IMG/VR virus record: IMGVR_UViG_3300048121_001678
Location: 186,001-250,000 of that record
Direction: 5' to 3' (one strand)
Length of the DNA: 64,000 nucleotides
Shown here piece after piece: positions 3,750 through 58,381 of the stretch. How positions within the stretch are numbered: the first letter of the stretch is position 1; every line of letters starts with the position of its first letter. The translations under genes were made by a program, and so were the position numbers. The notes beneath the pieces were generated by a model that did not search any database, was not told the DNA's origin, and saw only the letters and a program-made list of their open reading frames with translations.

Positions 3750-4136
3750 ATGAATACAGTAAGCCCAACATTACCTGAAGGAATCAAAAATTATCTAATT
3801 GATATCGATGGAACTATAACCGATGATGTACCCAATGAGGAACCTGAAAGAATGATTACTTGTTTACCCTACGAAGGTTCAATAGAAATGATTAATGAGT
3901 GGTATAAAGATGGTCATATAATTACTTTCTTTACTTCTCGTTCTGAAGAACACAGAAAAGTAACTGAAAAGTGGTTTGAAGAACATGGTTATAACTATCA
4001 TAATTTATTGATGAATAAACCACGTGGAGGAAACTATCACTGGATAGATAACCATATCGTTAGAGCGACTCGTTATAATGGTAAATGGACACAATTAAAA
4101 GATAAAGAAACAACAATACAAGTATTTGACGACTAA
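3750..4136 (+). CDS. HAD-superfamily phosphatase
   Basis: IDIDGTI motif I, FFTSR, KP..G; ATG at 3750 follows the dut stop. Confidence 0.75.
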   Translation: MNTVSPTLPEGIKNYLIDIDGTITDDVPNEEPERMITCLPYEGSIEMINEWYKDGHIITFFTSRSEEHRKVTEKWFEEHGYNYHNLLMNKPRGGNYHWIDNHIVRATRYNGKWTQLKDKETTIQVFDD

Positions 4137-17500: not shown

Positions 17501-19060
17501 ATGGCAATACCAGGTAACATAAGTAATGGTTCAAATAACTATTCACCAAAGAATTTTAGACAAATAGTCTATCATGGTACAGTACAAGATACTGACGACC
17601 CCTTTATGTTGGGTAGAATAAGGGTTTATCCTGAAGACCAAAACATTACCGATAAGTTAAATTCTGTTCCTGGTTTTGATGAATCAAAAGATAAATGGAA
17701 AAGAAATGACCCCTTTGTTTTCTTACCTTTAATACCATACTTTATTTATCAAGTACCAAAAAAAGACGAGTATGTTCATGTCATTTACACAAACCCAAAT
17801 GATAAAGATTTAAAAGGACAATTTTACATTCAAGGACCATTTTCATCACCAACAACGATTGAATTTGAAGACTCCAATTCTTCAGAAACTTTTTTAAGTT
17901 CAGGTACAAGAAATAAGAATCTTCCACCAATTAACGATACTAATAATAGTGGTAATACTATTAGTTCTTCAGGTATATATCCAAGACCTATTGATATTGC
18001 AATTTTAAGTAGAAGTAATTCTGACATCATATTAAAAGGCTCTGATGATATCCAAGGGGTGGATGGTGAAATTTTAATAAGAGCGGGTAAACATAATACC
18101 TTTAATAGTAAACAAAAACCCACACCTAAATCTGACAGAGCATTTTTACAGTTAAGTAATTACAAGACATTAGAACGATTTGCAGGAGTAGATACTCGAT
18201 ATTCTATAGTTAATGAAAATACTCAAACTAAAAAGTTAATCGAATACGAGGTATTTAATCCTGAAAATTTATTCAATGCGTTTACAGGTCAAATCATACT
18301 TTATAATCTATTACCAGATGAAATATCGGGTACAACAAGTGCGGATTCTATAAGAAACAACACTGATTTAGATTCTTTTAAACAAATCCAACATATTGAA
18401 CAATTTACAAAGTTAACAAAAAAAGAAGTAGCCGAAAAAGTTAATAAATTCATTAAAAACGTAATGAACGGTAGAATGGAAAATGGACTTTTGATTAATA
18501 ATCAATTTCCATTGTACTATCGTGCCAACATAGAAAATCGAAACGAATCTAGTGTTATATCTCTTAGTCGCTTGAAAAGTATATATATGTTAGTAAAACC
18601 AACAGAGTTTACAGTAAACACTAATGGCTTCGGCTTAGTTTATGATAAAACAGGTAAAACTAATGTTCCCGTTAAAATAAAAAAGAATGATTTTAGACCC
18701 AAAGATATTATAAATCAGGATAATACTGTTAGTGTTATGGGTGCAAACCAACTATATTTCTTATCTCACAATACTACTAACCCATCCAAAAGTAAAATTA
18801 ATTTAAATAATACATTATATGGTATAGACCAAACAAAGTTAGTTGAAGAGATACAGCCTAAGACGTCTTCAGTGGTTAGAGGTGAGGAACTTATGGTACT
18901 TATTGAATTAATTGTTAGATATCTCGCGACTCATGTTCATCCATTCCCTGGTTTACCACCGGTACCTGTTAGTTCTGACGGTACCAATGTTAGTGACTTA
19001 CTAAAAGAACTGTTAGATGCCAGTACAAAAATATTAAATAAGAATATTCGTATAAACTAA
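17501..19060 (+). CDS. baseplate hub/spike protein (gp5/gpV-like OB fold)
   Basis: GTVQDTDDPFMLGRIRV...VPKKDEYV OB-fold signature; C-terminal THVHP HxH motif. Confidence 0.65.
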   Translation: MAIPGNISNGSNNYSPKNFRQIVYHGTVQDTDDPFMLGRIRVYPEDQNITDKLNSVPGFDESKDKWKRNDPFVFLPLIPYFIYQVPKKDEYVHVIYTNPNDKDLKGQFYIQGPFSSPTTIEFEDSNSSETFLSSGTRNKNLPPINDTNNSGNTISSSGIYPRPIDIAILSRSNSDIILKGSDDIQGVDGEILIRAGKHNTFNSKQKPTPKSDRAFLQLSNYKTLERFAGVDTRYSIVNENTQTKKLIEYEVFNPENLFNAFTGQIILYNLLPDEISGTTSADSIRNNTDLDSFKQIQHIEQFTKLTKKEVAEKVNKFIKNVMNGRMENGLLINNQFPLYYRANIENRNESSVISLSRLKSIYMLVKPTEFTVNTNGFGLVYDKTGKTNVPVKIKKNDFRPKDIINQDNTVSVMGANQLYFLSHNTTNPSKSKINLNNTLYGIDQTKLVEEIQPKTSSVVRGEELMVLIELIVRYLATHVHPFPGLPPVPVSSDGTNVSDLLKELLDASTKILNKNIRIN

Positions 19061-19082
19061 GTATTTATAGTAAAAACGAATA

Positions 19083-20552
19083 ATGTCAATTTACAAGTCA
19101 TATTTTAAACGTAACGATACGTTAATTTTTAACTCATATACAAACACAGGTCAAAATCCTGTTGTTGAATTATTTTTTGGTCGAGTAGATAATTTAAATA
19201 CACCAAAAGGTTACTCACGTTTTATATTTGATATAGACTTAGAAGAATTACAAACTAAACTTTCTAACGGTACAATTTCTACAGGATGTACTCCGTCCAT
19301 GACACATACCTTAAGAATGACTAACACGTCTTCTTTTGATAAAGAATTATTAAATTCAACTTGGTCTAATGGTCGAAGAAGAGCAACATCATTCGACTTA
19401 ATATTATTTAGAATACCTAAAGTTTCAGGTTCCACTGGTGATTCCCAAACATGGGATGAGGGTGTAGGTCAAGATTATTACAACACAAAAGACGCACTTG
19501 AAGGCAATAAATCGTTTTCAGATAGACCAGTAAATTGGTACCAAAGAAATACTGTTAAAAATTGGTCAGTAAATGGATTATATGATAATTCAAATACACA
19601 AACAGGTTCAACTATTGGTTTAAATTATTCTGCACTAACTATTGTTGATAGACAACACTTTGAATTTGGTGATGAGGATATTGAGTTTGATATGACTAAT
19701 GAGATTAATGACGTTTTATCCGGTGCAACTACAGGAGTTACAGGGTGGGGAGTTGCATTTGTTCCTGAAGTAGAAAACATAACAGGTATGACTGAGAATT
19801 ATTCTGTTGGGTTTTTCTCTCGTCACACTCAGACCTTTTATGACCCATTCTTAGAGACAAACTATGATGACTTAATACAGGATGATAGATATACATTTTA
19901 TGAAGGTAAAAGTAATAAACTTTATCTTTACGCCTATGCAAATGGTAACCCAATTATTTTAGACAATAATCCTGAAGTGGATATTCTTGATGAAAGTGAT
20001 AATATAATTCAAACATTGACCGCTTGTAGTAGGTCTAATGGTGTTTATGAGGTAACAGTATCTGCAATAACGTCCTCAAATACCCCATGTATGTATTATG
20101 ATAATTGGAGAGAATTGGCATATAATGGTGATACTATTACACCGATAGAGAATGAATTCGTGTTACTTAAAAATGTGGATTATTTTACAATAGGTACTAG
20201 AACTGAAGAACCATCAATTTATGGTTTTGATTTTAATGGTATTCTACAAAATGAAAAAATTCTTAATACAGATATTAGAAAAGTTAATGTGACACTTAAA
20301 AAGGCGTACACCTCTAAGGAAGTTCTAAAACATGTTGACTGTTACTATAGAATATATGTCAAAGAAGGTAACACCGAAGTTCAGGTTCAAGATTGGACAC
20401 AAATTAATAGGACGGCTGACGGGTTTTACTTCGTATTCGACACAACTGATAAGATACCAAATGAATATTTTATAGATATCAAAGTGAACACTGACAGAGA
20501 AGTTAATACTTATAAAAGAGAACTACAATTCCAAATCGTAAACAAAAAATGA
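19083..20552 (+). CDS. probable virion structural protein
   Basis: TATTTAT at 19062-19068; beta-rich, T/N/S-rich composition. Confidence 0.55.
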   Translation: MSIYKSYFKRNDTLIFNSYTNTGQNPVVELFFGRVDNLNTPKGYSRFIFDIDLEELQTKLSNGTISTGCTPSMTHTLRMTNTSSFDKELLNSTWSNGRRRATSFDLILFRIPKVSGSTGDSQTWDEGVGQDYYNTKDALEGNKSFSDRPVNWYQRNTVKNWSVNGLYDNSNTQTGSTIGLNYSALTIVDRQHFEFGDEDIEFDMTNEINDVLSGATTGVTGWGVAFVPEVENITGMTENYSVGFFSRHTQTFYDPFLETNYDDLIQDDRYTFYEGKSNKLYLYAYANGNPIILDNNPEVDILDESDNIIQTLTACSRSNGVYEVTVSAITSSNTPCMYYDNWRELAYNGDTITPIENEFVLLKNVDYFTIGTRTEEPSIYGFDFNGILQNEKILNTDIRKVNVTLKKAYTSKEVLKHVDCYYRIYVKEGNTEVQVQDWTQINRTADGFYFVFDTTDKIPNEYFIDIKVNTDREVNTYKRELQFQIVNKK

Positions 20553-20800
20553 GAAAGATAAGGATAACTGAGGAACAACTTGAACAAATTGTTAAACGAG
20601 TAATAGACGAAAAGAAGAAGTCTAAAAAGAAAAAGAAAAAGAAGAAAGACACTACCCTATGTTCACGTGGTAAAAACGCGGCAAAGGCGAAATATGATGT
20701 TTATCCTTCAGCATATGCTAATGGATATGCCGTTCAAGTATGTAAAGGTAAGATGCCAGGATTGGACGGTAAAAAAAGATGTTCAGGAAAGTATTGTTAA
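20549..20800 (+). CDS. small basic protein (PSAYANG motif, DUF5872-like) with ITEEQL leader
   Basis: AKAKYDVYPSAYANGYAVQVCKG; poly-Lys tract. Confidence 0.65.
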   Translation: MRKIRITEEQLEQIVKRVIDEKKKSKKKKKKKKDTTLCSRGKNAAKAKYDVYPSAYANGYAVQVCKGKMPGLDGKKRCSGKYC

Positions 20801-40130: not shown

Positions 40131-42146
40131 ATGATAGAATCAGTTGACCCGAACGATAGTTCAAAAGGAAAGAAAGATAGATTACCTAAGTCTGGTACAC
40201 CAGTATTAGACAACTTTTCACGTGATTTAATTAAACATGCAGAACAAGGTAAGTTAGACCCTGTTGTTGGTCGTGACCGTGAAATTGAGCGTATTGCACA
40301 AATCCTCTCTCGTAGAAAGAAAAATAACCCTATTATCATTGGTGAACCAGGTTGTGGTAAGACAGCAATCATTGAGGGATTGGCCATGAAAATATATGAA
40401 GGTGATTGTCCTCGTAATTTATCAGATAAACGTATCGTGTCCTTAGATATGACATCAATCGTTGCAGGTACAAAGTATCGTGGACAATTTGAGGAACGTC
40501 TAAAGGTAATCTTAGATGAGTTATACGATAATCCAGATATCATTGTATTCATTGATGAAATACATACTATCATCGGAGCCGGTAACTCATCAGGTTCCTT
40601 AGATGCCTCAAATATCTTTAAACCGGCACTTGCACGTGGTGAACTACAATGTGTTGGTGCAACTACACTCGATGAGTATCGTGAAAATATTGAAAAAGAT
40701 GGAGCGTTAGAACGTCGTTTTCAGAAGGTTATGGTTGATGGGGCATCACCTGAAGAAACAATGATTATCTTACAGAATCTTAAATCACGTTACGAATCAC
40801 ATCATAAGGTATCTTACTCAGATGACTCTTTAGAAGCGTGTGTGTACTTAGCTGACCGTTACATTACTGACAGAGCATTTCCAGATAAAGCAATCGATAT
40901 TTTAGATGAGGTTGGTGCTCGTAGTCAAATCTCCGTGAAATTACCTGAAGAAATTGAAAAACTTAAAGACGAGGCAAATGTCATTAAATTGGAGAAAATC
41001 GATGTAGTTAAAGCACAGGACTATGAGAAAGCAGCACACCTTAGAGATAAGGAAAAGAAAATCCTTAAAGAATTGGATAAAGTTAAAATTGAGTTTGAAA
41101 ATAAGCAAGATGAGGAACGTAAACCAATTACTGAAGATATGGTATATGAAGTTGTCGCAAATATGACTAAAATACCTGTATCTAAACTTAATCAAAACGA
41201 AATGGAAGGATTGTTAGATTTAGAAAACAACCTTAATCAAACGGTAATTGGTCAAGAACCTGCAGTTAAGAAGATTTCTAAAGCAATACGTAGAAACCGT
41301 GTCGGTATTAAAGACCCAAGTCGCCCAATCGGTTCATTCATCTTCTTAGGTTCCACAGGTGTAGGTAAAACACACTTAGCTAAAAAATTGGCAAAAGAAA
41401 TTTTTGGAGATGAAGAGGCACTGATTAGAGTAGATATGTCTGAATACCAAGAAAAGTATACGATGTCACGTCTTATTGGTTCCCCTCCAGGTTATGTAGG
41501 TCATCAAGAAGGTGGACAACTAACTGAGAAAGTTAAAAATAAACCATATTCAGTAGTACTGTTTGATGAGATTGAAAAGGCAAATAAAGACATCTTCTCA
41601 CTTCTATTACAAGTTTTAGATGACGGTCACCTAACCGATAGTTTCGGTCGTAAAATCAACTTCAAAAACTGTTTAATTATTATGACATCAAACTTAGGTG
41701 TTAAGAAACTACAGGATTTCGGTGCAGGTGTTGGGTTTGACACAACTGCAAGAATTAGTGGTGACGAGGACCTTAAAAAGGCTCTTTTACAAAAAGAACT
41801 TAAGAATCACTTCACACCTGAATTCTTAAATCGATTAGATGAAGTAATTGTGTTCAACCCACTAAAAGAAAACGAAGTACGTCAGATTGTAGATATTGAG
41901 TTATCAAAACTAAATCAACGTTTAGAGAGGCTTGGGTATCACATTAACTTTACTGATGAAATTAAAACCATGTTAGGTGAAGTAGGTTATGATGAGAAAT
42001 ATGGGGCAAGACCAATCAAAAGAGCTATCCAAGAAAAGATTGAGGATTACATCTCTGAGGAAGTACTACGTCAAAATATCAAAATCGGACGTAACTACGA
42101 ACTTAAGTTTGTAGATGAAGAAGTGAAAATTGAGGAGGGGGGTTAA
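40131..42146 (+). CDS. clpC: ClpC-type AAA+ unfoldase lacking the N-domain
   Basis: GEPGCGKT/FIDEIH, UVR-like M-domain, GSTGVGKT/LFDEIEKA, GVGF ClpP-docking loop; TATATTTG at 40094. Confidence 0.9.
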   Translation: MIESVDPNDSSKGKKDRLPKSGTPVLDNFSRDLIKHAEQGKLDPVVGRDREIERIAQILSRRKKNNPIIIGEPGCGKTAIIEGLAMKIYEGDCPRNLSDKRIVSLDMTSIVAGTKYRGQFEERLKVILDELYDNPDIIVFIDEIHTIIGAGNSSGSLDASNIFKPALARGELQCVGATTLDEYRENIEKDGALERRFQKVMVDGASPEETMIILQNLKSRYESHHKVSYSDDSLEACVYLADRYITDRAFPDKAIDILDEVGARSQISVKLPEEIEKLKDEANVIKLEKIDVVKAQDYEKAAHLRDKEKKILKELDKVKIEFENKQDEERKPITEDMVYEVVANMTKIPVSKLNQNEMEGLLDLENNLNQTVIGQEPAVKKISKAIRRNRVGIKDPSRPIGSFIFLGSTGVGKTHLAKKLAKEIFGDEEALIRVDMSEYQEKYTMSRLIGSPPGYVGHQEGGQLTEKVKNKPYSVVLFDEIEKANKDIFSLLLQVLDDGHLTDSFGRKINFKNCLIIMTSNLGVKKLQDFGAGVGFDTTARISGDEDLKKALLQKELKNHFTPEFLNRLDEVIVFNPLKENEVRQIVDIELSKLNQRLERLGYHINFTDEIKTMLGEVGYDEKYGARPIKRAIQEKIEDYISEEVLRQNIKIGRNYELKFVDEEVKIEEGG

Positions 42147-42211: not shown

Positions 42212-43291
42212 ATGGAAAATAAAACAGTAGAAAGATTTAAAGAACTCTTATCCGTACCTTCAAAAACATACGAAGAGGACCAAATGGTAGAATACATATC
42301 ATCGGTACTAGATAGTATTGAGGGAGTCGAGTACTACACTGATGAGATGAATAACATCTACGCAACAAAACGACAAAGTGGATTTCGTGGTAAATTTCCA
42401 ATGTTTGTTGCTCATACTGACACTGTCCATAACTTAGTACCCGAAATCATTGTTGAGGAAAAAACACTTCCCAAACCACCAACATTTGGACGAACTTTTG
42501 ATGAAACTCAATACGACGTTCTAAAGGCCTATACCCCTGATGGTAACCCAACAGGTATTGGCGGTGACGATAAGTGTGGTATCTTCATTTGTTTGGAACT
42601 ACTACGAACACTATCAAATGTAAAAGTAGGACTATTCGTTTCTGAAGAAACGGGGTGTCACGGTTCAAGTAAATGTGATGTAAAATTCCTCAACGATGTA
42701 GGGTATATTGTACAATACGACGCACCCGGTAACCATCTTATTACTGAGTTATGTTCGGGTATCCGCCTATTTGAGGAAAAAGGGGATTTTATTAACCGAG
42801 CACTACCTGTAATTGAGAGAACCATGGAAACAAATATGGAATTACAATCTCACCCATACACTGACGTTTCACAACTGAAGAAAAAGAGTGATGTATCCTG
42901 TATTAATATTTCTTGTGGGTATTACGAGATGCACAGCTCAAATGAGTTTATCGTATTGGATGATGTAGATAAATCCATCAGAACAGGGATTAACTTAGTC
43001 AACGAGTTCGGATACGAAAAGCAAGAATACGCCTACGAACCACCAGTATACTCTTATGGGGGTTTGTTTAATCTTGATGATGTAGAAAATGACTTAGATG
43101 ATTGGGACGAATCCCTGTTAGATGGATTAAGTGACACTTTCGATTTAGAAGATAATGTGGTTGAGTTCGAATTTGGTGGAATAACTATTCAGAGCAAACA
43201 TACAGATGACACCATTTATATGGATGAATCTGACTCGGTAAAACTCTATGAACTTATCAGAGAAAATCTACTACTCAAAGGGGTCGAATAA
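42212..43291 (+). CDS. M20/M28 family Zn metallopeptidase
   Basis: AHTDTVH, GGDDKCG, EETGCHGS, QYD, YYEMH. Confidence 0.8.
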   Translation: MENKTVERFKELLSVPSKTYEEDQMVEYISSVLDSIEGVEYYTDEMNNIYATKRQSGFRGKFPMFVAHTDTVHNLVPEIIVEEKTLPKPPTFGRTFDETQYDVLKAYTPDGNPTGIGGDDKCGIFICLELLRTLSNVKVGLFVSEETGCHGSSKCDVKFLNDVGYIVQYDAPGNHLITELCSGIRLFEEKGDFINRALPVIERTMETNMELQSHPYTDVSQLKKKSDVSCINISCGYYEMHSSNEFIVLDDVDKSIRTGINLVNEFGYEKQEYAYEPPVYSYGGLFNLDDVENDLDDWDESLLDGLSDTFDLEDNVVEFEFGGITIQSKHTDDTIYMDESDSVKLYELIRENLLLKGVE

Positions 43292-45127
43292 CTGGTAGTT
43301 ACTCATCATTGACAAAAGAGAGGAAAGTTTCGACTTTCCTTTTTTTGTTTCAAAAGAATCTGTTTCAGGGTTATACCTATTAAGTGTGAACATAACCTTA
43401 TTAGTTTCAGGGTCTACACGGTCAACCTTAACATTTATATTATCCGTAGTTGGTATCTTTCTATATTTTCCGAAGTCACCGAATTTTTCTTTGACTTGTC
43501 CAATTATTTCTAAGTTTTTGTCAAAATCTAAAAAGAACTCGGCGTCATTTAATTTTTCCCACTCCTTTTCAAGTATAAAATCCAAATCACTATCAAACAT
43601 AGTCCTAAATGATTTATCATCAAAATGACCGTACACTAAATCAGTTGGGTAGTCAATAGGGAACGATACATTATTTGAAACGACTTCTTTTAACATATCA
43701 GATAAGTTTAAATCAGTAAGGTATTCACTGGATTCATATAATTTTATTAAATCAGATAAGTCGATATTGTACTCATAAAAACAATTTGAGCTGTCTTTAC
43801 TTTCAAAGCCAATGTCAGAAAGTAAGTCACATAAAAGACTACTAAACTCCTCCTGTGCGGCAATTATCATACCTTCGTTCATTGCCATAGAATAGGTTTC
43901 CCCTAGTGAATCCATAAATGAATCATCTAAATTATCAGACATAAATTTTGATATTTTCTTATCATCACCATCTTCTATGATATATTTTCCATTTTCATCC
44001 TTTATTAATTTGGAAATTTCAGGATTATAAACCTCAATGATTTCTTTTAAGATTGATAACTGTTCGTTGTTAAAGTAATTTAATACGTATCCATCACTGA
44101 AGTCTTCATCAAAATTATATGAATCATAAAGGTCTAATTCAGAACCATAAGGTGGGTCAATAACTGTACCAATGAAACTTAAATCATTTTCATCAACATC
44201 CTCTTCAAATAAATTTAAAAAGTCATAAATACCATCAAATTTAATATTAACATCATAATTATCATCACCTGATTTTTTTATTCCACCTAAATGGGGACTT
44301 TGTATTCTTCCTCTCACGTGGTCAATTTTACCTTCTAATATACCTTTTAGTGTTTCGTAATGTTTGTTTCCCTTAACCAATTTTCTAATTTCTTCTTGAA
44401 TCGGTGAAAACCTATCTAATAATACATCAACACTTCTAATACCGTCTCTTTGGTCATATACTTCCGTTTTACCGTCGTTTCTAACTAATAATGCCATCTT
44501 ACCCCATGTTGAGTCATTCGATTTCTTATCGATTATGTAATATAGGTTTCCTTCATCGGAGTATTTGTCAAAATATCTAGTGTCTCCTTTACTGGTGGTA
44601 CACCATTTTGTGTTTCGACCATAATAACATGATGCCCCGTGAGTGTATGGTTGAACAATTAAAAATCTATTGTCTTCATATATCCTATCAGACTCGTTTT
44701 TGGCTCCCCTTTCTTTTTCTTTTTGAACATTTCTTAAATATACTGCGTTTAAAACCGCTTGAAGTCCCCAAATAGAATCGTATTTATTAATATCTTTAGG
44801 ACCATTCAGAATCTTATTACCGTTTACCAATGATGAAGTAGTTTCGGCATATGTGATATCTTCAGGTGTGATGGATGATGACAACTTATGGAACTTTTCA
44901 ATAAGTTCAATGAAAAGATTTACATTGTCGGCAATTGAATATGTTAGTGGGTTTCCCAAACCAATCATTTGTTTAATCATCCACTCAGAGTATTTTTTTG
45001 TTGGTGATGGGTCACCATCAATAAGTTTTTCTAGTAACTCAACCGCATCGACAAATGTTTCAGTATCTTTGTACTTATCAATTAAGGTTTCTTTCTTACC
45101 CTCAAGTAAAATGTTGATGAATTTCAT
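43271..45127 (-). CDS. large hypothetical late protein (ASCYYG..TKWCT domain)
   Basis: 618-aa ORF with INILLE leader and TATTTAT at 45141-45147. Confidence 0.7.
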   Translation of the reverse strand: MKFINILLEGKKETLIDKYKDTETFVDAVELLEKLIDGDPSPTKKYSEWMIKQMIGLGNPLTYSIADNVNLFIELIEKFHKLSSSITPEDITYAETTSSLVNGNKILNGPKDINKYDSIWGLQAVLNAVYLRNVQKEKERGAKNESDRIYEDNRFLIVQPYTHGASCYYGRNTKWCTTSKGDTRYFDKYSDEGNLYYIIDKKSNDSTWGKMALLVRNDGKTEVYDQRDGIRSVDVLLDRFSPIQEEIRKLVKGNKHYETLKGILEGKIDHVRGRIQSPHLGGIKKSGDDNYDVNIKFDGIYDFLNLFEEDVDENDLSFIGTVIDPPYGSELDLYDSYNFDEDFSDGYVLNYFNNEQLSILKEIIEVYNPEISKLIKDENGKYIIEDGDDKKISKFMSDNLDDSFMDSLGETYSMAMNEGMIIAAQEEFSSLLCDLLSDIGFESKDSSNCFYEYNIDLSDLIKLYESSEYLTDLNLSDMLKEVVSNNVSFPIDYPTDLVYGHFDDKSFRTMFDSDLDFILEKEWEKLNDAEFFLDFDKNLEIIGQVKEKFGDFGKYRKIPTTDNINVKVDRVDPETNKVMFTLNRYNPETDSFETKKGKSKLSSLLSMMSNYQLFDPFE

Positions 45128-45132
45128 AAAAA

Positions 45133-45189
45133 CTTTTACTATAAATACTTGATAGTTTGGATAATTAACAAATAAGCCTTATATTTGAA
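45133..45189. promoter_or_regulatory. bidirectional late/early promoter cassette, copy 1
   Basis: Minus-strand TATTTAT plus plus-strand TTTG-N20-TATATTTG; closely similar to 46608-46664. Confidence 0.75.
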
Positions 45190-45191
45190 CT

Positions 45192-45428
45192 ATGAAAGAA
45201 ATTAAATTTATAAAAGACATAATGAAGAATCTATTTTTACCTCTGTTAGTATTGTTACTAATTGTTTCTTGTAGTACTAAAAATAACTCGACTATTAATG
45301 AATCAAACATTAACGATACTACTAACCAAACCATCATTTTAGTTAATGATACTCCAAGAGTAGTAATTGATACCGTGGCGGTACTTAATGATGACGGGAC
45401 CGTTGAATATTTTTACACTTACAAATAG
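45192..45428 (+). CDS. small lipoprotein
   Basis: MKNLFLPLLVLLLIVS-C lipobox. Confidence 0.7.
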   Translation: MKEIKFIKDIMKNLFLPLLVLLLIVSCSTKNNSTINESNINDTTNQTIILVNDTPRVVIDTVAVLNDDGTVEYFYTYK

Positions 45429-45437
45429 AAATACAAT

Positions 45438-46598
45438 CTATTTCCCTAATTTGTAATTACCCTGATTAGTTTTTTTGGTTGCTCTTCCACCTCCACTTGC
45501 CTTTCCGTAATTAACACCATTTATGTGACCATCCAAACCTCTACCTATTGGTAAATAAGTTTTTGGTTTAACTTGACTTATAAATGATTCAGACTTTTCA
45601 GGGTAATTCTCATCCAAATATATTTTAATACGTTTTTTATATTCATCTACAAGATAGTTAACAATATCATTATTAAATTTTTTATATATATCTTGATAAT
45701 AGTTTTCATTATGTCTTTTTGATTGTAAATCTGTATTTTTTAGTTTTGGTAATTTAGACAAATATGATTGAATAGGTTGAGTATCAATATTACCTAATTT
45801 ATTTGTATCATAATCTTTGTCTGCAAAATTTTTGTCTAAAGATTTAATCAAATTAACAATAATATCTGATATTTGTTTACTATTTTTACCTATGTATTTT
45901 TTGTGCAAATCATCCTTACTCTTAAAACTAGGGTAGTTAGATTTAGAATTAGTAATTATAAAAGAAGCGATATATCTGGCAATGCCGTTAAATGTTATTT
46001 GAGTATTGTTAATTTTAGACGGGTTCCAACTAACCATTCTACTTTCTCTTTTTTCACTAGACATACTAATAACCACCCTGTTTGGCATTTTTACTGTCGT
46101 ATCTGTTTTCATTGCTCTTGCCAGTGCTAGCAATCCATTTTGACAACCAATTATTCTTGTGACTCTATAGAAGATTTTATCACCGTCTTTAATATTATCA
46201 TCTTTATAAAATATGTCAGCATTAATACTTCCAGATTTATTTAGTTTGTAAATTTTACTATCACCCACACGTTTACCTTTTGAGTTTACTGGTGTAACAT
46301 AAAATTGAATAAAATCACCTAATTTAGCATCAGAAGGAGTTGATAATTCAGTAAATAAAGATAAATCTTTTGTTCCCACAAATGTTTTTCTTGCATTTGC
46401 CCATCCTCTCAATTCCCAAAAATTTTTGTAATTACTTTCATTGGCTTTTAATCCGTATTGTGTTAGTACCTTTGGATTAACTATTCTTTCAGGACTAGTA
46501 CTACCTTTAATAGTTTCAAACCCACTTTGTTCATTTAAAATATTTCTCACAATTTTCTGAATATCAGATTCAGTTAAACGTATAATTTTCTTTGCCAT
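45438..46598 (-). CDS. hypothetical basic late protein with IIRLTESDI leader
   Basis: 386-aa ORF; TATTTAT at 46616-46622. Confidence 0.7.
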   Translation of the reverse strand: MAKKIIRLTESDIQKIVRNILNEQSGFETIKGSTSPERIVNPKVLTQYGLKANESNYKNFWELRGWANARKTFVGTKDLSLFTELSTPSDAKLGDFIQFYVTPVNSKGKRVGDSKIYKLNKSGSINADIFYKDDNIKDGDKIFYRVTRIIGCQNGLLALARAMKTDTTVKMPNRVVISMSSEKRESRMVSWNPSKINNTQITFNGIARYIASFIITNSKSNYPSFKSKDDLHKKYIGKNSKQISDIIVNLIKSLDKNFADKDYDTNKLGNIDTQPIQSYLSKLPKLKNTDLQSKRHNENYYQDIYKKFNNDIVNYLVDEYKKRIKIYLDENYPEKSESFISQVKPKTYLPIGRGLDGHINGVNYGKASGGGRATKKTNQGNYKLGK

Positions 46599-46607
46599 GT
46601 TTAAAAT

Positions 46608-46664
46608 CTTTTACTATAAATACTTGACACTTTGGATTATTGATAAATTATACGTATATTTGAA
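46608..46664. promoter_or_regulatory. bidirectional late/early promoter cassette, copy 2
   Basis: CTTTTACTATAAATACTTGA-nnn-TTTGGAT-N17-TATATTTGAA shared with 45133-45189. Confidence 0.75.
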
Positions 46665-46683
46665 TTATAAGCAAATAAACAAT

Positions 46684-47271
46684 ATGAAAAAATTAATCAC
46701 CTCACTTCTGATTTTACTGACATTATCTGTAAACGCCCAATATGATTTAAATTCACACCCACTATTCTCTGATGTATGGAGAATGGAGCAAATTGAATAT
46801 TTTGGTCAACTTACTAATTATTTACTTCCTAAGGACACCACAAAGTCATTTGGTTTTAAAACAAAACATATAGGACCCGCAATTGACCTTGTAAAGGTAA
46901 AGTCGTACCTCGCACAATCATATAAAGAATTTAGAAGTGATTACGGATTATATACACCTGTAGAAGATAAAAAGATGTCTAAACAATGTGAGGTATATTC
47001 AAAGACATTAATTAATAAGGAGGTGTTAAAACATAGTAACTATAAGAATAAGTATTCAGAATGTTTAGGTAATATAAGTTATATGACATTATCACATTTA
47101 GACACTAATAATATAGATATTAACAAAGTTATTGCCGACTGTTTTTTCGATTTGTTTGTTGGTTGTCCCGCACATATGTCAATACTACTAAATGAAAATA
47201 TTTCATCAGTAGGTTTTGGTTTTTCCGAAGAGGCAGGTGGTTTAGTTGTTTGTTTTAGAAGTAAGAAATAA
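46684..47271 (+). CDS. secreted protein with CAP/SCP-like domain
   Basis: Signal peptide MKKLITSLLILLTLSVNA-Q; LKHS...SEC...CPAHMSILLN...VGFG. Confidence 0.6.
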   Translation: MKKLITSLLILLTLSVNAQYDLNSHPLFSDVWRMEQIEYFGQLTNYLLPKDTTKSFGFKTKHIGPAIDLVKVKSYLAQSYKEFRSDYGLYTPVEDKKMSKQCEVYSKTLINKEVLKHSNYKNKYSECLGNISYMTLSHLDTNNIDINKVIADCFFDLFVGCPAHMSILLNENISSVGFGFSEEAGGLVVCFRSKK

Positions 47272-47299
47272 AAAAAGGAGGGAAAACCCTCCTTTTTTT
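47271..47299. terminator. bidirectional terminator
   Basis: AAAAAAGGAGGG-AAAA-CCCTCCTTTTTTT. Confidence 0.85.
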
Positions 47300-47305
47300 A
47301 TTAGT

Positions 47306-48373
47306 TTAATCAAATGCTGGACAAAGTGTTTGACTTGGTCTACGTCGTTTAGATTTGTTTTTGGATTTTTTAATCCATGTATATAATGGTATTTTAATAG
47401 ATATACCTTTAGTTCTTCTCTGGAATGTAACTTTATATAGTTTGGTTGTCAGTGTTTCTTCACCCCCGTCTTTCCCTGGTGATGGAGGTTTATTTAGAAC
47501 AACCTGAATATCAACATTTAAATATTTATAAGGTTCATATTTAGACTTATCAGAGCCTTTTTTCCATTCAGGTCCTGATGTTCCATCACCATTTTGACCT
47601 TTATAGTTTTGAGTGATTACCGTATTTGAATCAGTTATAACACCTAAGGAGTTTAATTGAGATTCTATATATTTTAATGCACTATCATTCCTTAATTTAG
47701 ATAACTCCTTAAACGTATATGTTTTACCGTCAGGAGATTGAGTATTAGGTATTCTCGATGCCGAAGTATCAACATTTAAATTTTTTAAGTACATTTTAGG
47801 TTTACCCTCTAAGCTCTTCATTGATTCTAATTGAGTTTTAATTGGGTCAATAACATCTTTTTTAAATTGCTCTTTAAAATATGGTGTAGTTTCATAGTAA
47901 TTATCGACAAAGAAATCTGAAGAAGGTGAATTATTCGCTGGAAAAACTACTGGTAACGAAGGATACACTTTAGGTTCTCCAGGTACTTTTTCAGTTCTTT
48001 CACCCGCATTACTACAGTACACTCTATTCCATTTATTTTCCGGATAAGTTTCGTTGAATGACTCAACCGTTGCCACCGCTAAATCTATTTGATTTTTCTT
48101 AATTTCTTCCCACTTAGTTCGACTTGTTTTTGTCATCAGAGAAACCATTACATTCGCCTCAGGTCCGTTAACAAACTCTTCCCATTGTTCTTCTGAAAGT
48201 TCTGGTTGTACATTACCTTGTTTTAATGTTTTTTTATCTTTAGTTTTGGATTTAATAATTTGAACACGCTTAGTTCCCACACGTCTCAATTGTTCATTAT
48301 ACTCTTGTTCTTCAAGTACCTTTCTAACCATATTCTCCAAATCAGATTCAGATATTTTTACTACTTTCCTCAT
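47306..48373 (-). CDS. hypothetical late protein with VKISESDL leader, possibly OmpA-C-like domain
   Basis: ATG at 48373; VDTSASRIPN...LSKLRNDSALKYI. Confidence 0.6.
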   Translation of the reverse strand: MRKVVKISESDLENMVRKVLEEQEYNEQLRRVGTKRVQIIKSKTKDKKTLKQGNVQPELSEEQWEEFVNGPEANVMVSLMTKTSRTKWEEIKKNQIDLAVATVESFNETYPENKWNRVYCSNAGERTEKVPGEPKVYPSLPVVFPANNSPSSDFFVDNYYETTPYFKEQFKKDVIDPIKTQLESMKSLEGKPKMYLKNLNVDTSASRIPNTQSPDGKTYTFKELSKLRNDSALKYIESQLNSLGVITDSNTVITQNYKGQNGDGTSGPEWKKGSDKSKYEPYKYLNVDIQVVLNKPPSPGKDGGEETLTTKLYKVTFQRRTKGISIKIPLYTWIKKSKNKSKRRRPSQTLCPAFD

Positions 48374-48401
48374 AATGCTACGTTTTATTAATGATAAATA
48401 G

Positions 48402-48458
48402 TTTGTTATTAGAAAAAAAGTATTTATATTTGTACTCAGAAACAAAAGTTCTTTGAAA
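48402..48458 (+). promoter_or_regulatory. tmRNA promoter plus boxA-like element
   Basis: TTTG-N19-TATATTTG followed by GTTCTTTGAAA. Confidence 0.7.
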
Positions 48459-48462
48459 TTAT

Positions 48463-48852
48463 GGGGGTGAATGGAATTGATTGGCAGGGTCAGTTGCACG
48501 GGGCACGTAGTGAGATGTTATCTATCACTTTAATCTATGATGGCAATTTTGTAATCGGCGAAACTTTCGCAAAACTTCAGGCAGTAGGTCTCCTACGTAC
48601 TGAAGAAGTAGCTGTAGCGTAAGACGTTAACAGTGAATCGGGTCGGTCAGGACATGTACCTATGAACAGAAGTCCGTTGTTGTGGTGGAAAAACGATTAA
48701 ACCCTAAATTGAGTCGTACATCTATTGGTGATAGAGGATGTAAAAATTCAATCACATATTTCGGAACATTGTGAACTAATGTTGACCTAAACGTGTAGTC
48801 CTTTGTAGGTGGACTGAACAAGACGCGGGTTCGAATCCCGCCACCTCCACCA
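48463..48852 (+). ncRNA. ssrA: tmRNA
   Basis: 5' GGGGGTG pairs with CACCTCC-ACCA 3' (G3.U wobble); T-arm GCGGGTTCGAATCCCGC; internal tag ORF 48557-48622. Confidence 0.93.
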
Positions 48853-48859
48853 AAGCTAA

Positions 48860-48894
48860 GGTCCAATAGAGTTTATCTATTGGACTTTTTTTTT
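48860..48894 (+). terminator. terminator after tmRNA
   Basis: GTCCAATAGA-GTTTA-TCTATTGGAC followed by a T run. Confidence 0.8.
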
Positions 48895-48925
48895 ATAAAC
48901 TATATGTTATTACAAAACAAAACTT

Positions 48926-51297: not shown

Positions 51298-52179
51298 TTA
51301 TAAGGACATTAACATGTCCAATAACTCTTGTTGTGGGAACATATCCACTTTATCTTTACGGGTGTTTGTGTGTGTCCACAAACCTTTAACCTTACCGTAG
51401 TATGCGTCCTCATTCCATTCGAATGCATCTGCACCTTTATCTTTAATCAATGATGGTAATCCTGCTCTAATATCAATACCGTCTCTATCACCAATCCATA
51501 ATATCCACTTTCTTAACGCTTCAATTTGTTCGTCAGAATAACGATGCCACGTTTTGTGACCTCTAAATTCTTTATCAAGTGTAACTATTTGTGACTCAGC
51601 AACAGATGTTCCAGCATATGTTTTACCATTCTTAATCCATCCAAAGTTACAAACCTCAATGGCAACTGAGTTAACGTGCATCTTTTGTGAACCATTTTTA
51701 CCTAAGTGCCAACCGTAATTACCTTCAGGGAAAGCTTGTACCATTACACCGTCATATGTGTCATCATTACCCTTTACTGATTGACCACCCAGTACAAATT
51801 CCGTGGCAACTGCACCTCTACTGTCTCTACCCCACGAATCAATACATTTATAAGGATTATTCCAACCTGCAGTGTGGTGTAAAAATAACCATTCAGGTTT
51901 AATTGGACCTTCTTTATATTCACCCTTAGGTAAAAAATGTTGGTTTATCATCAAACCATTATCAGTGGTATAAGACTGTTCAGAATTATCTGTAGTTGCT
52001 AGACCCATTGCGTCCCAAGTTTTTGGACCTACTATCCCGTCAGAAACCAAACCATTATCCATTTGCCATTTTTTAACAGTTAACTCTGTACCTTTACCAA
52101 AAATACCATCGGTAGTTATATTGAAGAATTCTTGTAGAGTTTTCACTTCTTTACCTCTTGAACCTATTTTTAAAATCAT
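51298..52179 (-). CDS. endolysin: PG-binding domain plus amidase_2
   Basis: GSRGKEVK.LQ...DGIFGKGT...DGIVGPKTW; LHHTAG, IEVCN, WTH...DK.D. Confidence 0.85.
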   Translation of the reverse strand: MILKIGSRGKEVKTLQEFFNITTDGIFGKGTELTVKKWQMDNGLVSDGIVGPKTWDAMGLATTDNSEQSYTTDNGLMINQHFLPKGEYKEGPIKPEWLFLHHTAGWNNPYKCIDSWGRDSRGAVATEFVLGGQSVKGNDDTYDGVMVQAFPEGNYGWHLGKNGSQKMHVNSVAIEVCNFGWIKNGKTYAGTSVAESQIVTLDKEFRGHKTWHRYSDEQIEALRKWILWIGDRDGIDIRAGLPSLIKDKGADAFEWNEDAYYGKVKGLWTHTNTRKDKVDMFPQQELLDMLMSL

Positions 52180-56028: not shown

Positions 56029-57270
56029 TTATAAGTTTGCTAGTTCACTATCCATATTACTTAATACTTTATTAATATATTCAACTTTTTCTTCGTCCGT
56101 GGTTTCAATCACCTTTCCAATCGAAATTTGTACACTTTCCTTAATTTCTGTTGATTCATTAACCATTTGAGATAATAAATCTTTTTGAAACTTTTCTTTT
56201 TCTTTTTCAGATAGTTTAACGTATTCTTCAGGTAACTCAACTCTTCTGTAATCCAATCCTTTAATTTCGACACCTAAAATTTTACCAATTTGCATAAAAG
56301 TGAGGAGTCCACCTCCTAACGCAGCTACTCTCCAAGTTGCTCTCCATGGGAGTAGACCAACTTTAGTAAAATATAATAACGCACCTATTAATTTCTTACC
56401 CGTATATTTTGACAAAGATTTTGAAATTAAACTACTTAGTTTCGAATATGCTTGGACATTTTTACCTATCCAATCAGCATTCTTTTCAAGTTCCATACTA
56501 AGCTTTCTTTCCATTGGTGATAAATCTAAACCCTTTGATACTTTATTTAAAAAGGTTTTAAGTGCACCAGATGTGAACTTTTTTACAAAAGGAATTTTAT
56601 TCAATAACATACCACCAGGTATAACTGCAAACGCAGCACCAATACCTGCCGATTCATAATCCTTCTCTTTAACATATAATGCGATATCCGCAGCTTCTAA
56701 AACACCGGCAATAGCAAGACCACCGATTCCACCTGTTGCCACAGTAACGATAAGTGCACCTATAGGTAATACCCAATGCCAAAAATCTTCAGGTAATGGA
56801 GGTGATGTTTGACGCTCTTCCCAATCTTCTAAATCTGATTTATAAACCTTCATTAATAGACCCTTACCTTTAATACCTTTACAAGATGTCCTATATTGGG
56901 AACAACTACATATTTTATTATCCTTACAAAGTCTTTTTAATCGTGGAGATGTGTACGTTACAAAGTAATCTAATTTATTCATCATCACCTTCTTGTCATA
57001 TGATGACATATTTGATGAGTATACAATGTCTTGGTGAGATGGAGGACTAGGTTTATTTTTACCTGTGTAGTTTAACATTAATCCAGGTGGTATTGACTTT
57101 CCATCAGGCATCAAACCTAAATACTGAGGGTCAACTCTAGTGTTATCTGACTGCATAGTCCTATCAGGAATATTAAACTGCTGTTCCTGAATATTCTCAT
57201 TAAGGGTTTTAGACGAATCGTAATTCATCTTTAATAATATATCTTTTAATATTTGTTCATTATCTACCAT
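56029..57270 (-). CDS. hypothetical late membrane-inserting protein
   Basis: G/A-rich hydrophobic hairpin WVLPIGALIVTVATGGIGGLAIAG...AGIGAAFAVIPGG. Confidence 0.65.
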   Translation of the reverse strand: MVDNEQILKDILLKMNYDSSKTLNENIQEQQFNIPDRTMQSDNTRVDPQYLGLMPDGKSIPPGLMLNYTGKNKPSPPSHQDIVYSSNMSSYDKKVMMNKLDYFVTYTSPRLKRLCKDNKICSCSQYRTSCKGIKGKGLLMKVYKSDLEDWEERQTSPPLPEDFWHWVLPIGALIVTVATGGIGGLAIAGVLEAADIALYVKEKDYESAGIGAAFAVIPGGMLLNKIPFVKKFTSGALKTFLNKVSKGLDLSPMERKLSMELEKNADWIGKNVQAYSKLSSLISKSLSKYTGKKLIGALLYFTKVGLLPWRATWRVAALGGGLLTFMQIGKILGVEIKGLDYRRVELPEEYVKLSEKEKEKFQKDLLSQMVNESTEIKESVQISIGKVIETTDEEKVEYINKVLSNMDSELANL

Positions 57271-57557
57271 AATGGGTTTCCTTTGCCTCTATTTATTCCT
57301 GAGTCCCATTTAGACGTACCGTCAATTGGATTGGCTTTACCTCTTGTTAATCCTGTTTCCCATGTTGTCATTGATGGTCCTGATGGTGCTGGTTCTCCAT
57401 CATCTTGCTCATCAATTTCACCTTCAGTTTCATCATCAGGATAACAATCACATCCATCGTCATAACCTTCAGGACCTTTATACATTGGACTATTAGGTTC
57501 TTCATCGATACCCATGACTTCCTTAATACGTGAAATATCTTCTTTTAATAACCCCAT
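57264..57557 (-). CDS. small late protein with W..G..RGK.NP repeat
   Basis: WETGLTRGKANPI and WDSGINRGKGNPL; LLKEDISRIKEVMG leader. Confidence 0.7.
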   Translation of the reverse strand: MGLLKEDISRIKEVMGIDEEPNSPMYKGPEGYDDGCDCYPDDETEGEIDEQDDGEPAPSGPSMTTWETGLTRGKANPIDGTSKWDSGINRGKGNPLW

Positions 57558-57617
57558 TAGGAAACATTTCTATATAAATAGTTAGTTTTATTAAAAAATA
57601 GTTTGTATATTCGTTTT

Positions 57618-57875
57618 ATGAAGAACAAATATAACATTAATGAATCGGTTTATGATTGCAAAACTAAAGAAGTGAAAACCATTAAGGATTTTGAATTTTT
57701 TGAATCTATGGTTTTATATTACTTTGATGGAGGTGGGGCATCTCCAGAGTCAAAATTATTATCACCAATTTTCATGGAGTTTATGAATGTCGTAAACACG
57801 TCAATGGAAGAAAAAGAAAAAGAAATTGATAACGTATTAAAAAATATAACTAACGAACTAAACGAATTAGTCTAA
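57618..57875 (+). CDS. hypothetical protein
   Basis: ATG at 57618; TAATG-coupled to the lipoprotein gene. Confidence 0.6.
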   Translation: MKNKYNINESVYDCKTKEVKTIKDFEFFESMVLYYFDGGGASPESKLLSPIFMEFMNVVNTSMEEKEKEIDNVLKNITNELNELV

Positions 57876-58381
57876 TGAAGAAATTACTATATCTATTACC
57901 CTTATTATTATTTGGTTGCGAAAAGTCGTACCCTACTTATCCAAACTTAGATGGGGAGTACGTAATTGACCACGTAATTGTATTAACTGAAGACCAAGTA
58001 TACGGATGGAGAGAGGACACTGTGTACCATTATGGTAGTTTTAATCTATTTGAACCTCAAACACCGTTGGATACATTCTTAGTAGGTGTAACACGTTTTA
58101 AGGTAACCGACAATAATAGAACGTTCTATTGGAATAAAGACACCACAGTATTTGGTAATCCGTGGTCGTCAAGGGCGGAATGTACGGTACGTCAAGATAT
58201 TTTATCAGGTCAATGGGATGTAATGTCAGTTCATTTCTTTAACACTAACACGGTAAGTAGGGTATATGAAATATCATATGTGGGCATTGATGAGTTTTCT
58301 GTGTGGCAAACACAATACCCCTACAAGGCGGAAGGACCACAACATAAAATAAGGTACCACTTCAAAGAAGTAGGACCATAA
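57875..58381 (+). CDS. lipoprotein
   Basis: MKKLLYLLPLLLFG-C lipobox; LDGEY beta-barrel-like start. Confidence 0.75.
   Translation: MKKLLYLLPLLLFGCEKSYPTYPNLDGEYVIDHVIVLTEDQVYGWREDTVYHYGSFNLFEPQTPLDTFLVGVTRFKVTDNNRTFYWNKDTTVFGNPWSSRAECTVRQDILSGQWDVMSVHFFNTNTVSRVYEISYVGIDEFSVWQTQYPYKAEGPQHKIRYHFKEVGP

Follow-up and report, generated by a model that had tools for sequence, protein, structure and literature searches.

In T4-type phages, short conserved promoter elements known as PeSL cassettes are repeated within hyperplastic regions, where they flank variable accessory genes and serve as homologous exchange points, with the result that a gene and its regulatory signals travel together (Arbiol et al. 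2010, PMC2839356; Comeau et al. 2014, PMC4122927). Here we describe a comparable element in a 64,000-nt stretch of viral DNA (the window; bases 186001-250000 of IMG/VR record IMGVR_UViG_3300048121_001678). It is a short cassette, present twice, that combines a late promoter on one strand with a predicted host-type promoter on the other. The two cassettes lie in an island between the gene for a protein that we call P618 and the phage transfer-messenger RNA (tmRNA), and they bound modules of two facing genes, one for a protein with a conserved N-terminal leader and one for a small exported protein. Comparison with related marine phages revealed that the convergent gene pair is the inherited unit, and that modules are traded by recombination at two kinds of site, the cassettes and the leader codons.

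The proteins encoded at this locus recall further systems. The T4 internal proteins (IPI, IPII, IPIII and Alt) are unrelated, late and mostly basic proteins that share a short conserved leader with an h-x-E end and come from a polymorphic locus (PMC3012670, PMC9026906). In T4 the leader directs proteins that are otherwise diverse to the capsid (PMC3012670), and the prohead protease gp21 cleaves after L/I-X-E (PMC9026906). In polymorphic toxin-immunity pairs, which include phage MuF toxins (PMC5576092) and those wall effectors of type VI secretion systems (T6SS) that act in the periplasm and have exported immunity proteins (TseH-type), the N-terminal delivery part is constant and the C-terminal part varies. 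A small partner encoded next to the effector co-varies with it and is exported to the place where it acts. In T4, the early periplasmic protein Spackle (gp61.3) neutralises the gp5 tail lysozyme, a wall-active virion protein, of an incoming relative (PMC7677548, PMC7650644). Finally, the lytic phage T5 makes a small superinfection-exclusion lipoprotein, Llp, from an early promoter (10.1101/2022.06.28.497910). Llp is reported to block FhuA, the receptor, and its gene is paired with that of the receptor-binding protein.

The source record is a single contig of 297,164 bp (34% G+C), whose sequence occurred in seawater metagenomes only. It encodes a gp23-like major head protein, with Rhodothermus phage RM378, T4-like cyanophages and Flavobacterium phage immuto as nearest named relatives, together with a T4-type portal, a large terminase and a gp21-family prohead protease (phrog_207, E 8.9e-44). 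This 297-kb marine phage belongs to the T4 superfamily, and its promoters are, judged by their motifs, of the Bacteroidota kind. Neither a DNA search of the region nor tblastn searches with P386 and P356 gave a match among GenBank phages. The main features of the locus, in window coordinates, are the following.

43271-45127, minus strand: P618, with a late motif 9 nt before the ATG; PHROGs 17056 and 28193.
45127-45193, two-way: cassette 1, the P618 late promoter (plus-strand letters 45133-45152) back to back with the Lipo78 host-type promoter.
45156 and 45180-45187, rightward: host-type half of cassette 1, leading to Lipo78; -33 box TTTGG at 45156 and -7 box TATATTTG at 45180-45187.
45192-45428, plus strand: Lipo78, a small lipoprotein with the lipobox LIVSC.
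45438-46598, minus strand: P386, a late-motif gene; leader MAKKIIRLTESDIQKIVRNILNEQ; mature part basic, of an orphan type.
46602-46668, two-way: cassette 2, the P386 late promoter (46608-46627) back to back with the CAP196 host-type promoter.
46631 and 46655-46662, rightward: host-type half of cassette 2, leading to CAP196; -33 box at 46631 and -7 box at 46655-46662.
46684-47271, plus strand: CAP196, with a signal peptide ending VNA-Q and a divergent CAP/SCP-like domain; phrog_16914.
47267-47302, two-way: terminator hairpin between CAP196 and P356, with a 16-bp stem and A/T runs on both sides.
47306-48373, minus strand: P356; leader MRKVVKISESDLENMVRKVLEEQEYNEQ; predicted OmpA/MotB-like fold at residues ~133-293; C-terminal Cys.
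48376-48462: cassette 3, a diverged P356 late box overlapping the tmRNA host-type promoter (48402-48432).
48463-48852, plus strand: tmRNA (ARAGORN; Rfam RF00023, 82.5 bits, full length), with a terminator at 48858-48888.

Relatives were reached through P618 homologues, which yielded ~20 related marine phage contigs, and we tabulated 20 modules from 17 relatives. In the window and in the relatives the island holds one or two convergent two-gene modules. A ClpB-M42-P618 gene row is conserved on one side of it, and the tmRNA with DUF6952 and DUF6011 genes on the other; P618 thus flanks the island and lies outside the modules, and the tmRNA, present in the relatives, is the fixed right-hand border. 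The build of the modules is constant: a leader-protein gene (158-518 amino acids (aa)) on the P618 strand stands tail to tail with an exported-protein gene (68-198 aa), the product of which carries a signal peptide or lipobox. Their content is not, as the mature parts fall into ~13 unrelated leader-protein types and ~12 partner types, and the genes between the cassettes are 15-25% identical among relatives, compared with 50-99% for the flanks. Every boundary between an exported gene and the next late gene in the relatives bears a cassette of ~57-67 nt. Because every module boundary bears this same cassette, the apparent duplication in the window is better described as two modules in tandem.

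Three relatives were close enough to the window to locate the joints. In L010, an 83% identical block (46669..44345) begins at the right edge of cassette 2 and contains P386, Lipo78, cassette 1 and the first ~260 codons of P618, beyond which P618 is only ~30% identical. L028 shares a 95% block (48921..46600: tmRNA, P356, CAP196 and cassette 2) in a background of 70-77%; the block ends at 46600, the left edge of cassette 2, and L028 lacks the P386/Lipo78 module. In L044, with flanks of 97% and 93-97% identity, window segment 45187..48305 is replaced by one other module, in which a hairpin separates the genes for a leader protein of 174 aa and an exported protein of 141 aa. The replaced stretch begins at the cassette 1 -7 box and finishes with the last codon of the P356 leader. 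Across these three relatives, four of the six breakpoints (46669, 46600, 45187 and 48305) lie at a cassette edge or at the end of the leader codons, and it is in this respect that the element resembles the PeSL regulatory cassettes. The island is hyperplastic, with modules gained, lost and replaced. A preliminary description of the window had taken these genes for repeated two-gene units, and repeated units they are, which related genomes swap. Two DNA runs (X5, X6) contained the same strain in pieces, and no variant joints, including mini-circle joints of the PeSL type, were seen in their contigs. Beside the tmRNA of another relative (L009:1122-1526) we noticed an open reading frame (ORF) with a LAGLIDADG-like start (MNWNYISGFFDADGYI), which may be a homing endonuclease that adds to the plasticity of the island.

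The preliminary description had left open whether the partner of each leader protein is its divergent or its convergent neighbour. The co-movement of genes in two relatives settles this in favour of the convergent one. Lipo78 and P386 travel together in L010 (91% and 86% identity), where the adjoining P618 is at 49%, and CAP196 and P356 travel together in L028 (97% and 93%). The divergent, promoter-sharing pairs P618|Lipo78 and P386|CAP196 are not kept elsewhere and are repeatedly broken up. The inherited units are therefore P386 with Lipo78 and P356 with CAP196. Similarly, a similar partner went with a similar leader protein in 12 of 12 module pairs, and the reverse was found in none, so that pairs do co-vary and swap together, although this is partly expected from cassette exchange.

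Since pairing within the island could follow from the geometry of exchange, we examined it outside the island as well. A degenerate DNA pattern for the P356-family motif GxNGDG[TS]SGP retrieved 70 loci from IMG/VR, in which a family hidden Markov model confirmed 68 members; 42 were distinct and full length, and 40 had a readable downstream neighbour. Behind 30 of these 40 genes we found a tail-to-tail signal-peptide gene, at gaps of -14 to +58 nt, compared with 5 of 131 other ORFs of ≥300 aa in the same loci (p 8e-20). Most of the remaining P356-family genes had an exported neighbour in another orientation, or one missed by our crude detector. Pairing is therefore a property of the two families and not of the island. 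The timing signals also recur in these other phages, as host-type promoters matching a strict pattern precede 16 of 32 partners and 1 of 32 P356-family genes. The genes 5' of the P356-family members there belong mostly to phrog_36119, of unknown function, and gave no hint of a structural operon.

The cassettes themselves consist of a 67-nt repeat (45127-45193 and 46602-46668) with 84% identity, and the 20-mer first noted at 45133 and 46608 forms its exact core. This 20-mer, CTTTTACTATAAATACTTGA, has exact copies at 45133-45152 and 46608-46627 and a further site with three mismatches at 19057-19076 on the minus strand; 0.04 matches are expected in shuffled sequence, and none of 100 shuffles reached three. 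Read on the strand of the leftward gene, the late motif is AAGTATTTATA[AG]TAAAA (its core can also be written TATTTATA[AG]T) and lies 8-16 nt 5' of the ATG. There are ~20 sites genome-wide. Because the nameable genes behind them encode the portal, the prohead protease, the tail sheath, a neck/adaptor protein and an endolysin-like protein, and none is a replication gene, 'late promoter' is a fair label. The reverse complement of the motif contains the T4-style TATAAATA, and we considered whether the box might point right. This was rejected, as the motif keeps its fixed distance from the leftward ATG, which sets its direction as leftward, and as a rightward TATAAATA would fire antisense in one-directional late operons.

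The rightward half of the cassette, TTTGG-N19-TATATTTG, matches the Bacteroidota -33/-7 consensus (13 matches in the window, 3.6 expected) and is by this motif predicted to be a strong host-sigma, and hence early, promoter. The ClpB-like, M42 peptidase and tmRNA genes have a host-type promoter of this kind as well. Motif position and the genome-wide gene sets thus uphold the directions originally given to the two halves, late leftward and host-type rightward. The combined pattern occurs only twice in the 297,164-bp genome, both times in the island. Within the window, the likeness of the two cassettes is mostly that of two near-consensus promoters at a fixed spacing: their spacers are identical at a fraction of 0.67, and those of unrelated promoters of the same type at 0.28-0.61. 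The cassette counts as a unit because of its behaviour in relatives, where the orthologous cassette retains 73-100% identity and its left 29 nt average 95%.

Between P356 and the tmRNA lies a third element, which had been taken for a diverged third copy of the cassette. Its position between a leader protein and the tmRNA is as described, but cassette 3 belongs to a different, independently conserved type of element. An insertion of 3-4 nt interrupts its late box, so that P356, unlike P386, has a diverged late motif, and the same type of element is found between leader protein and tmRNA in L003, L004, L008, L010 and L012.

Compared with PeSL cassettes, the element described here differs in several ways. 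It is two-way, its late and host-type promoters lying on opposite strands, and the latter follows the Bacteroidota -33/-7 consensus. We detected no stem-loop within 45127-45193 or 46602-46668; the hairpin lies instead at 47267-47302, between the genes of a module, so that the terminator is placed mid-module. There are two copies in the genome, both in this one island, compared with ~50 PeSL. The element bounds convergent gene pairs where PeSL bound single ORFans, and the leader codons provide a second exchange point.

The leader that these codons specify (~22-28 aa) recurs in P386 and P356, in three small proteins from the same genome and in every module protein from the relatives, and the mature parts behind it share ~20% identity. 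The preliminary description had assigned large leader-bearing proteins to the leftward side of each cassette. This was correct for P386 and P356; P618 has no such leader. In the P356 family, the pattern h-x-E-Q was present in the first 70 aa of 82 of 99 members, where it closes an N-terminal helix, compared with 15 of 99 in a control stretch, with a median Glu position of 24, and this leader end fits the cleavage site of a T4 gp21-type protease by motif. In seven family members the leader is replaced by a Sec signal peptide. A cellular relative with a signal peptide (P0084) lies on a 4.7-kb contig, the context of which was uninformative. Several features together make a head-targeting propeptide our best reading of the leader: its h-x-E-Q end, the gp21-type protease in the genome, late promoters, mature parts that are basic, and a poly-Lys protein that shares it. 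The poly-Lys protein (20549-20800, plus strand; 83 aa) carries the leader, then a lysine run and YPSAYANGYA; it lies beside the block of head genes and may be a small internal protein of the head. In contrast to the T4 internal proteins, the leader here is longer and of other sequence, the proteins are large (174-518 aa), their domains are of wall-binding or wall-cutting kinds instead of cytoplasmic anti-restriction folds, an exported partner gene is present, and packaging and cleavage are putative.

P356 itself belongs to a family of at least 125 clusters (counted as family representatives). Its AlphaFold2 (AF2) model, with a predicted local distance difference test (pLDDT) of 89.2, points to an OmpA/MotB-like wall-binding fold: all top Foldseek matches were OmpA/MotB (probability up to 0.99), and a VIA search gave Z 8.8 with ~120 residues aligned over whole target domains, its top 23 matches all being OmpA-like. 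Look-alikes in a structure atlas lean toward OmpA at 0.81 only, and a BFVD search returned one 'OmpA-like' entry, all its other matches being uncharacterised proteins from uncultured phages. P356 itself did not match Pfam OmpA, and 4 of 110 family members did so weakly, under the cut-off. An Asp and an Arg, which we take to be the canonical wall-binding residues of OmpA-like domains, were assigned in P356 on this basis; the invariant R228 (LSxxR) is kept, and the Asp position reads Ser in an SxSRxRN block. The mature part is basic. At the extreme C-terminus (window 47306-47320), a CPxF motif carries a Cys that is nearly invariant in the family, which suggests a disulfide or other covalent link and would fit an oxidising, periplasmic site of action.

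Both rightward proteins proved to be of the exported kind, as initially proposed, one by its lipobox and the other by its signal peptide. The assignment of CAP196 to the CAP fold is less firm in the protein itself (19.5 bits, E 0.0019, under the Pfam CAP cut-off of 21.1) than among its counterparts: four of nine partners at the same position in relatives matched Pfam CAP (best 9.6e-7), as did 11 of 33 partners in other IMG/VR phages (best 3.7e-12). A hairpin similar to that between CAP196 and P356 separates the two genes of the L044 module. Less can be said of the other module. For P386 only close homologues were found, GenBank phages giving none. A search of a set of 5.8 billion proteins with the leader region alone (residues 1-40) yielded just three close homologues, a 25-aa motif being too short for significance in so large a set; its ESM model reached a pLDDT of 0.43, and there were no look-alikes in the structure atlas. 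That P386 might be a hidden member of the P356 family was rejected (hhalign probability 2%). No Pfam or PHROG family was found for Lipo78, whose true start may be the second ATG at 45222 (68 aa). Its gene and that of P386 end 9 nt apart, with no terminator between them.

The clearest effector-like module of the set, by its domains, comes from a 311-kb contig (L036:3235-4913). It encodes a 355-aa leader protein with PG_binding_1 and a TseH-like domain, as in T6SS wall hydrolases, and L036 alone has a hydrolase domain of this kind. The gene tail to tail with it specifies a Peptidase_C92 lipoprotein of 204 aa. In a smaller, different phage group (L019-L024, ~4001-4330), the leader is combined with a PG_binding_1-like motif in a protein of 110 aa.

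How might such pairs function? We propose that the leader is a capsid-targeting propeptide, which the gp21-type prohead protease would remove after h-x-E. The leader proteins would thus be packaged with the head and enter the next cell on infection, where the envelope would be the site of action of their wall-binding or wall-cutting domains (OmpA/MotB-like, or PG_binding_1 with TseH-like in the relative). In a cell that is already infected, the exported partner would be made early and would meet and neutralise the matching protein of a later-arriving relative. The outcome would be a kin-specific superinfection exclusion like that exerted by T4 Spackle on the gp5 lysozyme, and the resulting arms race could drive the joint variation of both genes. 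Separate timing would account for the tail-to-tail layout of the two genes in place of a common operon. From the sequence comparisons we regard this mechanism, with a head-packed, wall-acting leader protein neutralised by an early exported partner of the resident phage, as plausible, with a confidence that stops somewhat short of even. It is possible, but in our view rather doubtful, that this would amount to a widespread polymorphic effector-immunity system of marine Bacteroidota T4-like phages, shuffled via cassettes and leader codons.

The likeness to Spackle is one of proposed mechanism: Spackle and gp5 are neither adjacent nor a polymorphic pair, gp5 is a tail-spike enzyme and not a leader-tagged head protein, and the CAP fold is a different one. 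Toxin-immunity pairs share the architecture, and L036 places a TseH-like domain in the effector position. Here, however, the partner is convergent and separately timed instead of co-transcribed, the fold of most putative effectors is a binding one that is not known to be toxic, and the phage is a lytic T4-like one instead of a temperate phage or a secretion system.

Several observations also weigh against this interpretation. Virion packaging, leader cleavage, toxicity, neutralisation and exclusion are all putative. T4 head proteins go with the DNA to the cytoplasm and not to the periplasm. An OmpA-like fold binds and is not obviously harmful, and of the canonical wall-binding pair P356 has kept the Arg (LSxxR) alone; for P386 and Lipo78 no fold could be recognised. 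A complex prediction for P356(29-355) with CAP196(20-195) scored 0.00, which amounts to no answer and is evidence neither way. Co-inheritance within the island is expected from cassette-mediated exchange alone. The pairing is not universal, as the 110-aa protein of L019-L024 has no exported neighbour and lies among genes of the nucleotide-metabolism type, and in genomes of the L036 type the CAP gene and the P356-family gene are transcribed away from each other instead of converging. Finally, RNA-library contigs (X15, X16) covered CAP196, P356 and the tmRNA more than P618 and P386, but this coverage is undirected and of low depth, and may be DNA.

The two proteins might also co-operate in the envelope instead of opposing each other, for example in the timing or completion of lysis, in wall remodelling or in the tethering of progeny. 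Endolysins have no signal peptides, and by the same route the late protein might reach the wall through holin lesions. The endolysin-type modules in the relatives' leader proteins (PG_binding_1 with TseH-like, and the PG_binding_1-like motif) would suit such a role, as would the phage endolysin 3 kb away (51298-52179) and the presence of the late motif 5' of an endolysin-like gene. A conserved leader with a protease-type end is, however, foreign to endolysins, and housekeeping lysis is unlikely to have diversified into more than ten unrelated types or to vary between one and two copies. We therefore consider a co-operating pair unlikely, though worth keeping in view, and place the holin route at the same level.

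Another explanation would be that the cassettes are promoters and recombination joints in the manner of PeSL, and that the genes between them are independent accessory genes that travel together with no action on each other. The breakpoints at the cassettes, the spacer similarity that within the window barely exceeds that of unrelated promoters, and the PeSL precedent (PMC2839356) are all in line with this, and the complex prediction, having returned no answer, lends no support to an interaction. It would leave unexplained why each of ~13 unrelated module types is made of one leader protein and one exported protein, and why the pairing recurs (30/40 versus 5/131) in other phages without the island. 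We regard this explanation as improbable.

Alternatively, the leader proteins could be injected anti-defence proteins that act in the cytoplasm like IPI*, and the exported genes could serve separate ends such as takeover or receptor masking. A hypervariable locus of leader-tagged, basic, late proteins does resemble the T4 internal-protein locus (PMC3012670, PMC9026906). For the masking function T5 Llp would be the model; Llp acts on a receptor, and nothing ties Lipo78 to one. The predicted fold is of a periplasmic wall-binding kind, cellular relatives bear Sec signals, and the tight and widespread pairing with an exported protein would go unexplained, which together render this alternative quite improbable. 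A transcriptional switch, in which early antisense transcription silences the late gene and late transcription then stops the early one, would suit the 9-nt gap without terminator between Lipo78 and P386 and the short gaps usual in other phages (-14 to +58 nt), but we deem it the least probable account, given the strong two-way terminator in the P356/CAP196 and L044 modules and its silence on the protein make-up of the modules, and it is in any case compatible with any of the others.

Regardless of function, the island provides an example of a fast-evolving locus in a large lytic phage where regulation and recombination site are one short element, and it extends the PeSL idea, in two-way form, from coliphages to marine phages with promoters of the Bacteroidota type. 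It also defines a pair of genes, frequent in ocean viromes and so far without an assigned role, that encode a leader-tagged OmpA-like protein and an exported CAP-like one. If the pair does mediate exclusion, competition among related phages would shape marine phage genomes as toxin-immunity systems shape bacterial ones, and this would be a first function for CAP-domain proteins of bacteria and phages. The h-x-E-Q leader may, in addition, help to predict head-packaged proteins in uncultured T4-like phages.

P618, the left-hand neighbour of the island, has a mosaic identity profile of its own. Its N-terminal ~230 aa are kept, residues ~265-595 are hypervariable and the last ~20 aa are kept again; the N-terminal part has 464 homologues. 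Its gene overlaps that of the M42 peptidase (plus strand) tail to tail by 21 nt (43271-43291), and it is within this overlap that the last ~20 residues are conserved despite the ~330 hypervariable ones before them. The protein is acidic (117 D+E, 73 K+R) and weakly similar to jumbo-phage proteins, including EST35_0205 of PA5oct, a structural protein identified by electrospray ionisation tandem mass spectrometry (ESI-MS/MS). It matched no Pfam family, and its AF2 model (pLDDT 86.8) gave no fold match in Foldseek PDB or VIA wide searches (best Z 7.0, short helical stretches only). A paralogue of its N-terminal domain (534 aa; genome 22303-23907, minus strand; locus L049; PHROGs 17056 and 28193) is preceded by the same late promoter and recalls the row of paralogous structural proteins in PA5oct.

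Left of P618, a ClpB/ClpC-like AAA+ gene (40131-42146) and the M42 peptidase gene (42212-43291, plus strand) form a row with the tmRNA, each with a host-type promoter, which looks like a proteostasis set. In four relatives (L003, L004, L008 and L038), genes for a thioredoxin and an AhpC-type peroxiredoxin are added beside the tmRNA. The phage endolysin gene is on the minus strand and adjoins a glycosyltransferase family 25 gene; its domains, according to the gene tables of the relatives, are PG_binding_1 and Amidase_2.

An arrangement similar to that of the cassettes had also been reported near 57574, and it is indeed present, with leader-type proteins on the left and a lipoprotein on the right. 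The former are two more late proteins (56029-57557, minus strand) with other leader styles (MGLLKEDISRIKEVMGI... and ...LKMNYDSSKTLNENIQEQ), and the latter (57875-58381, plus strand; MKKLLYLLPLLLFGC) is encoded in an operon divergent from them. Both leader styles recur in the P356 family of other phages.

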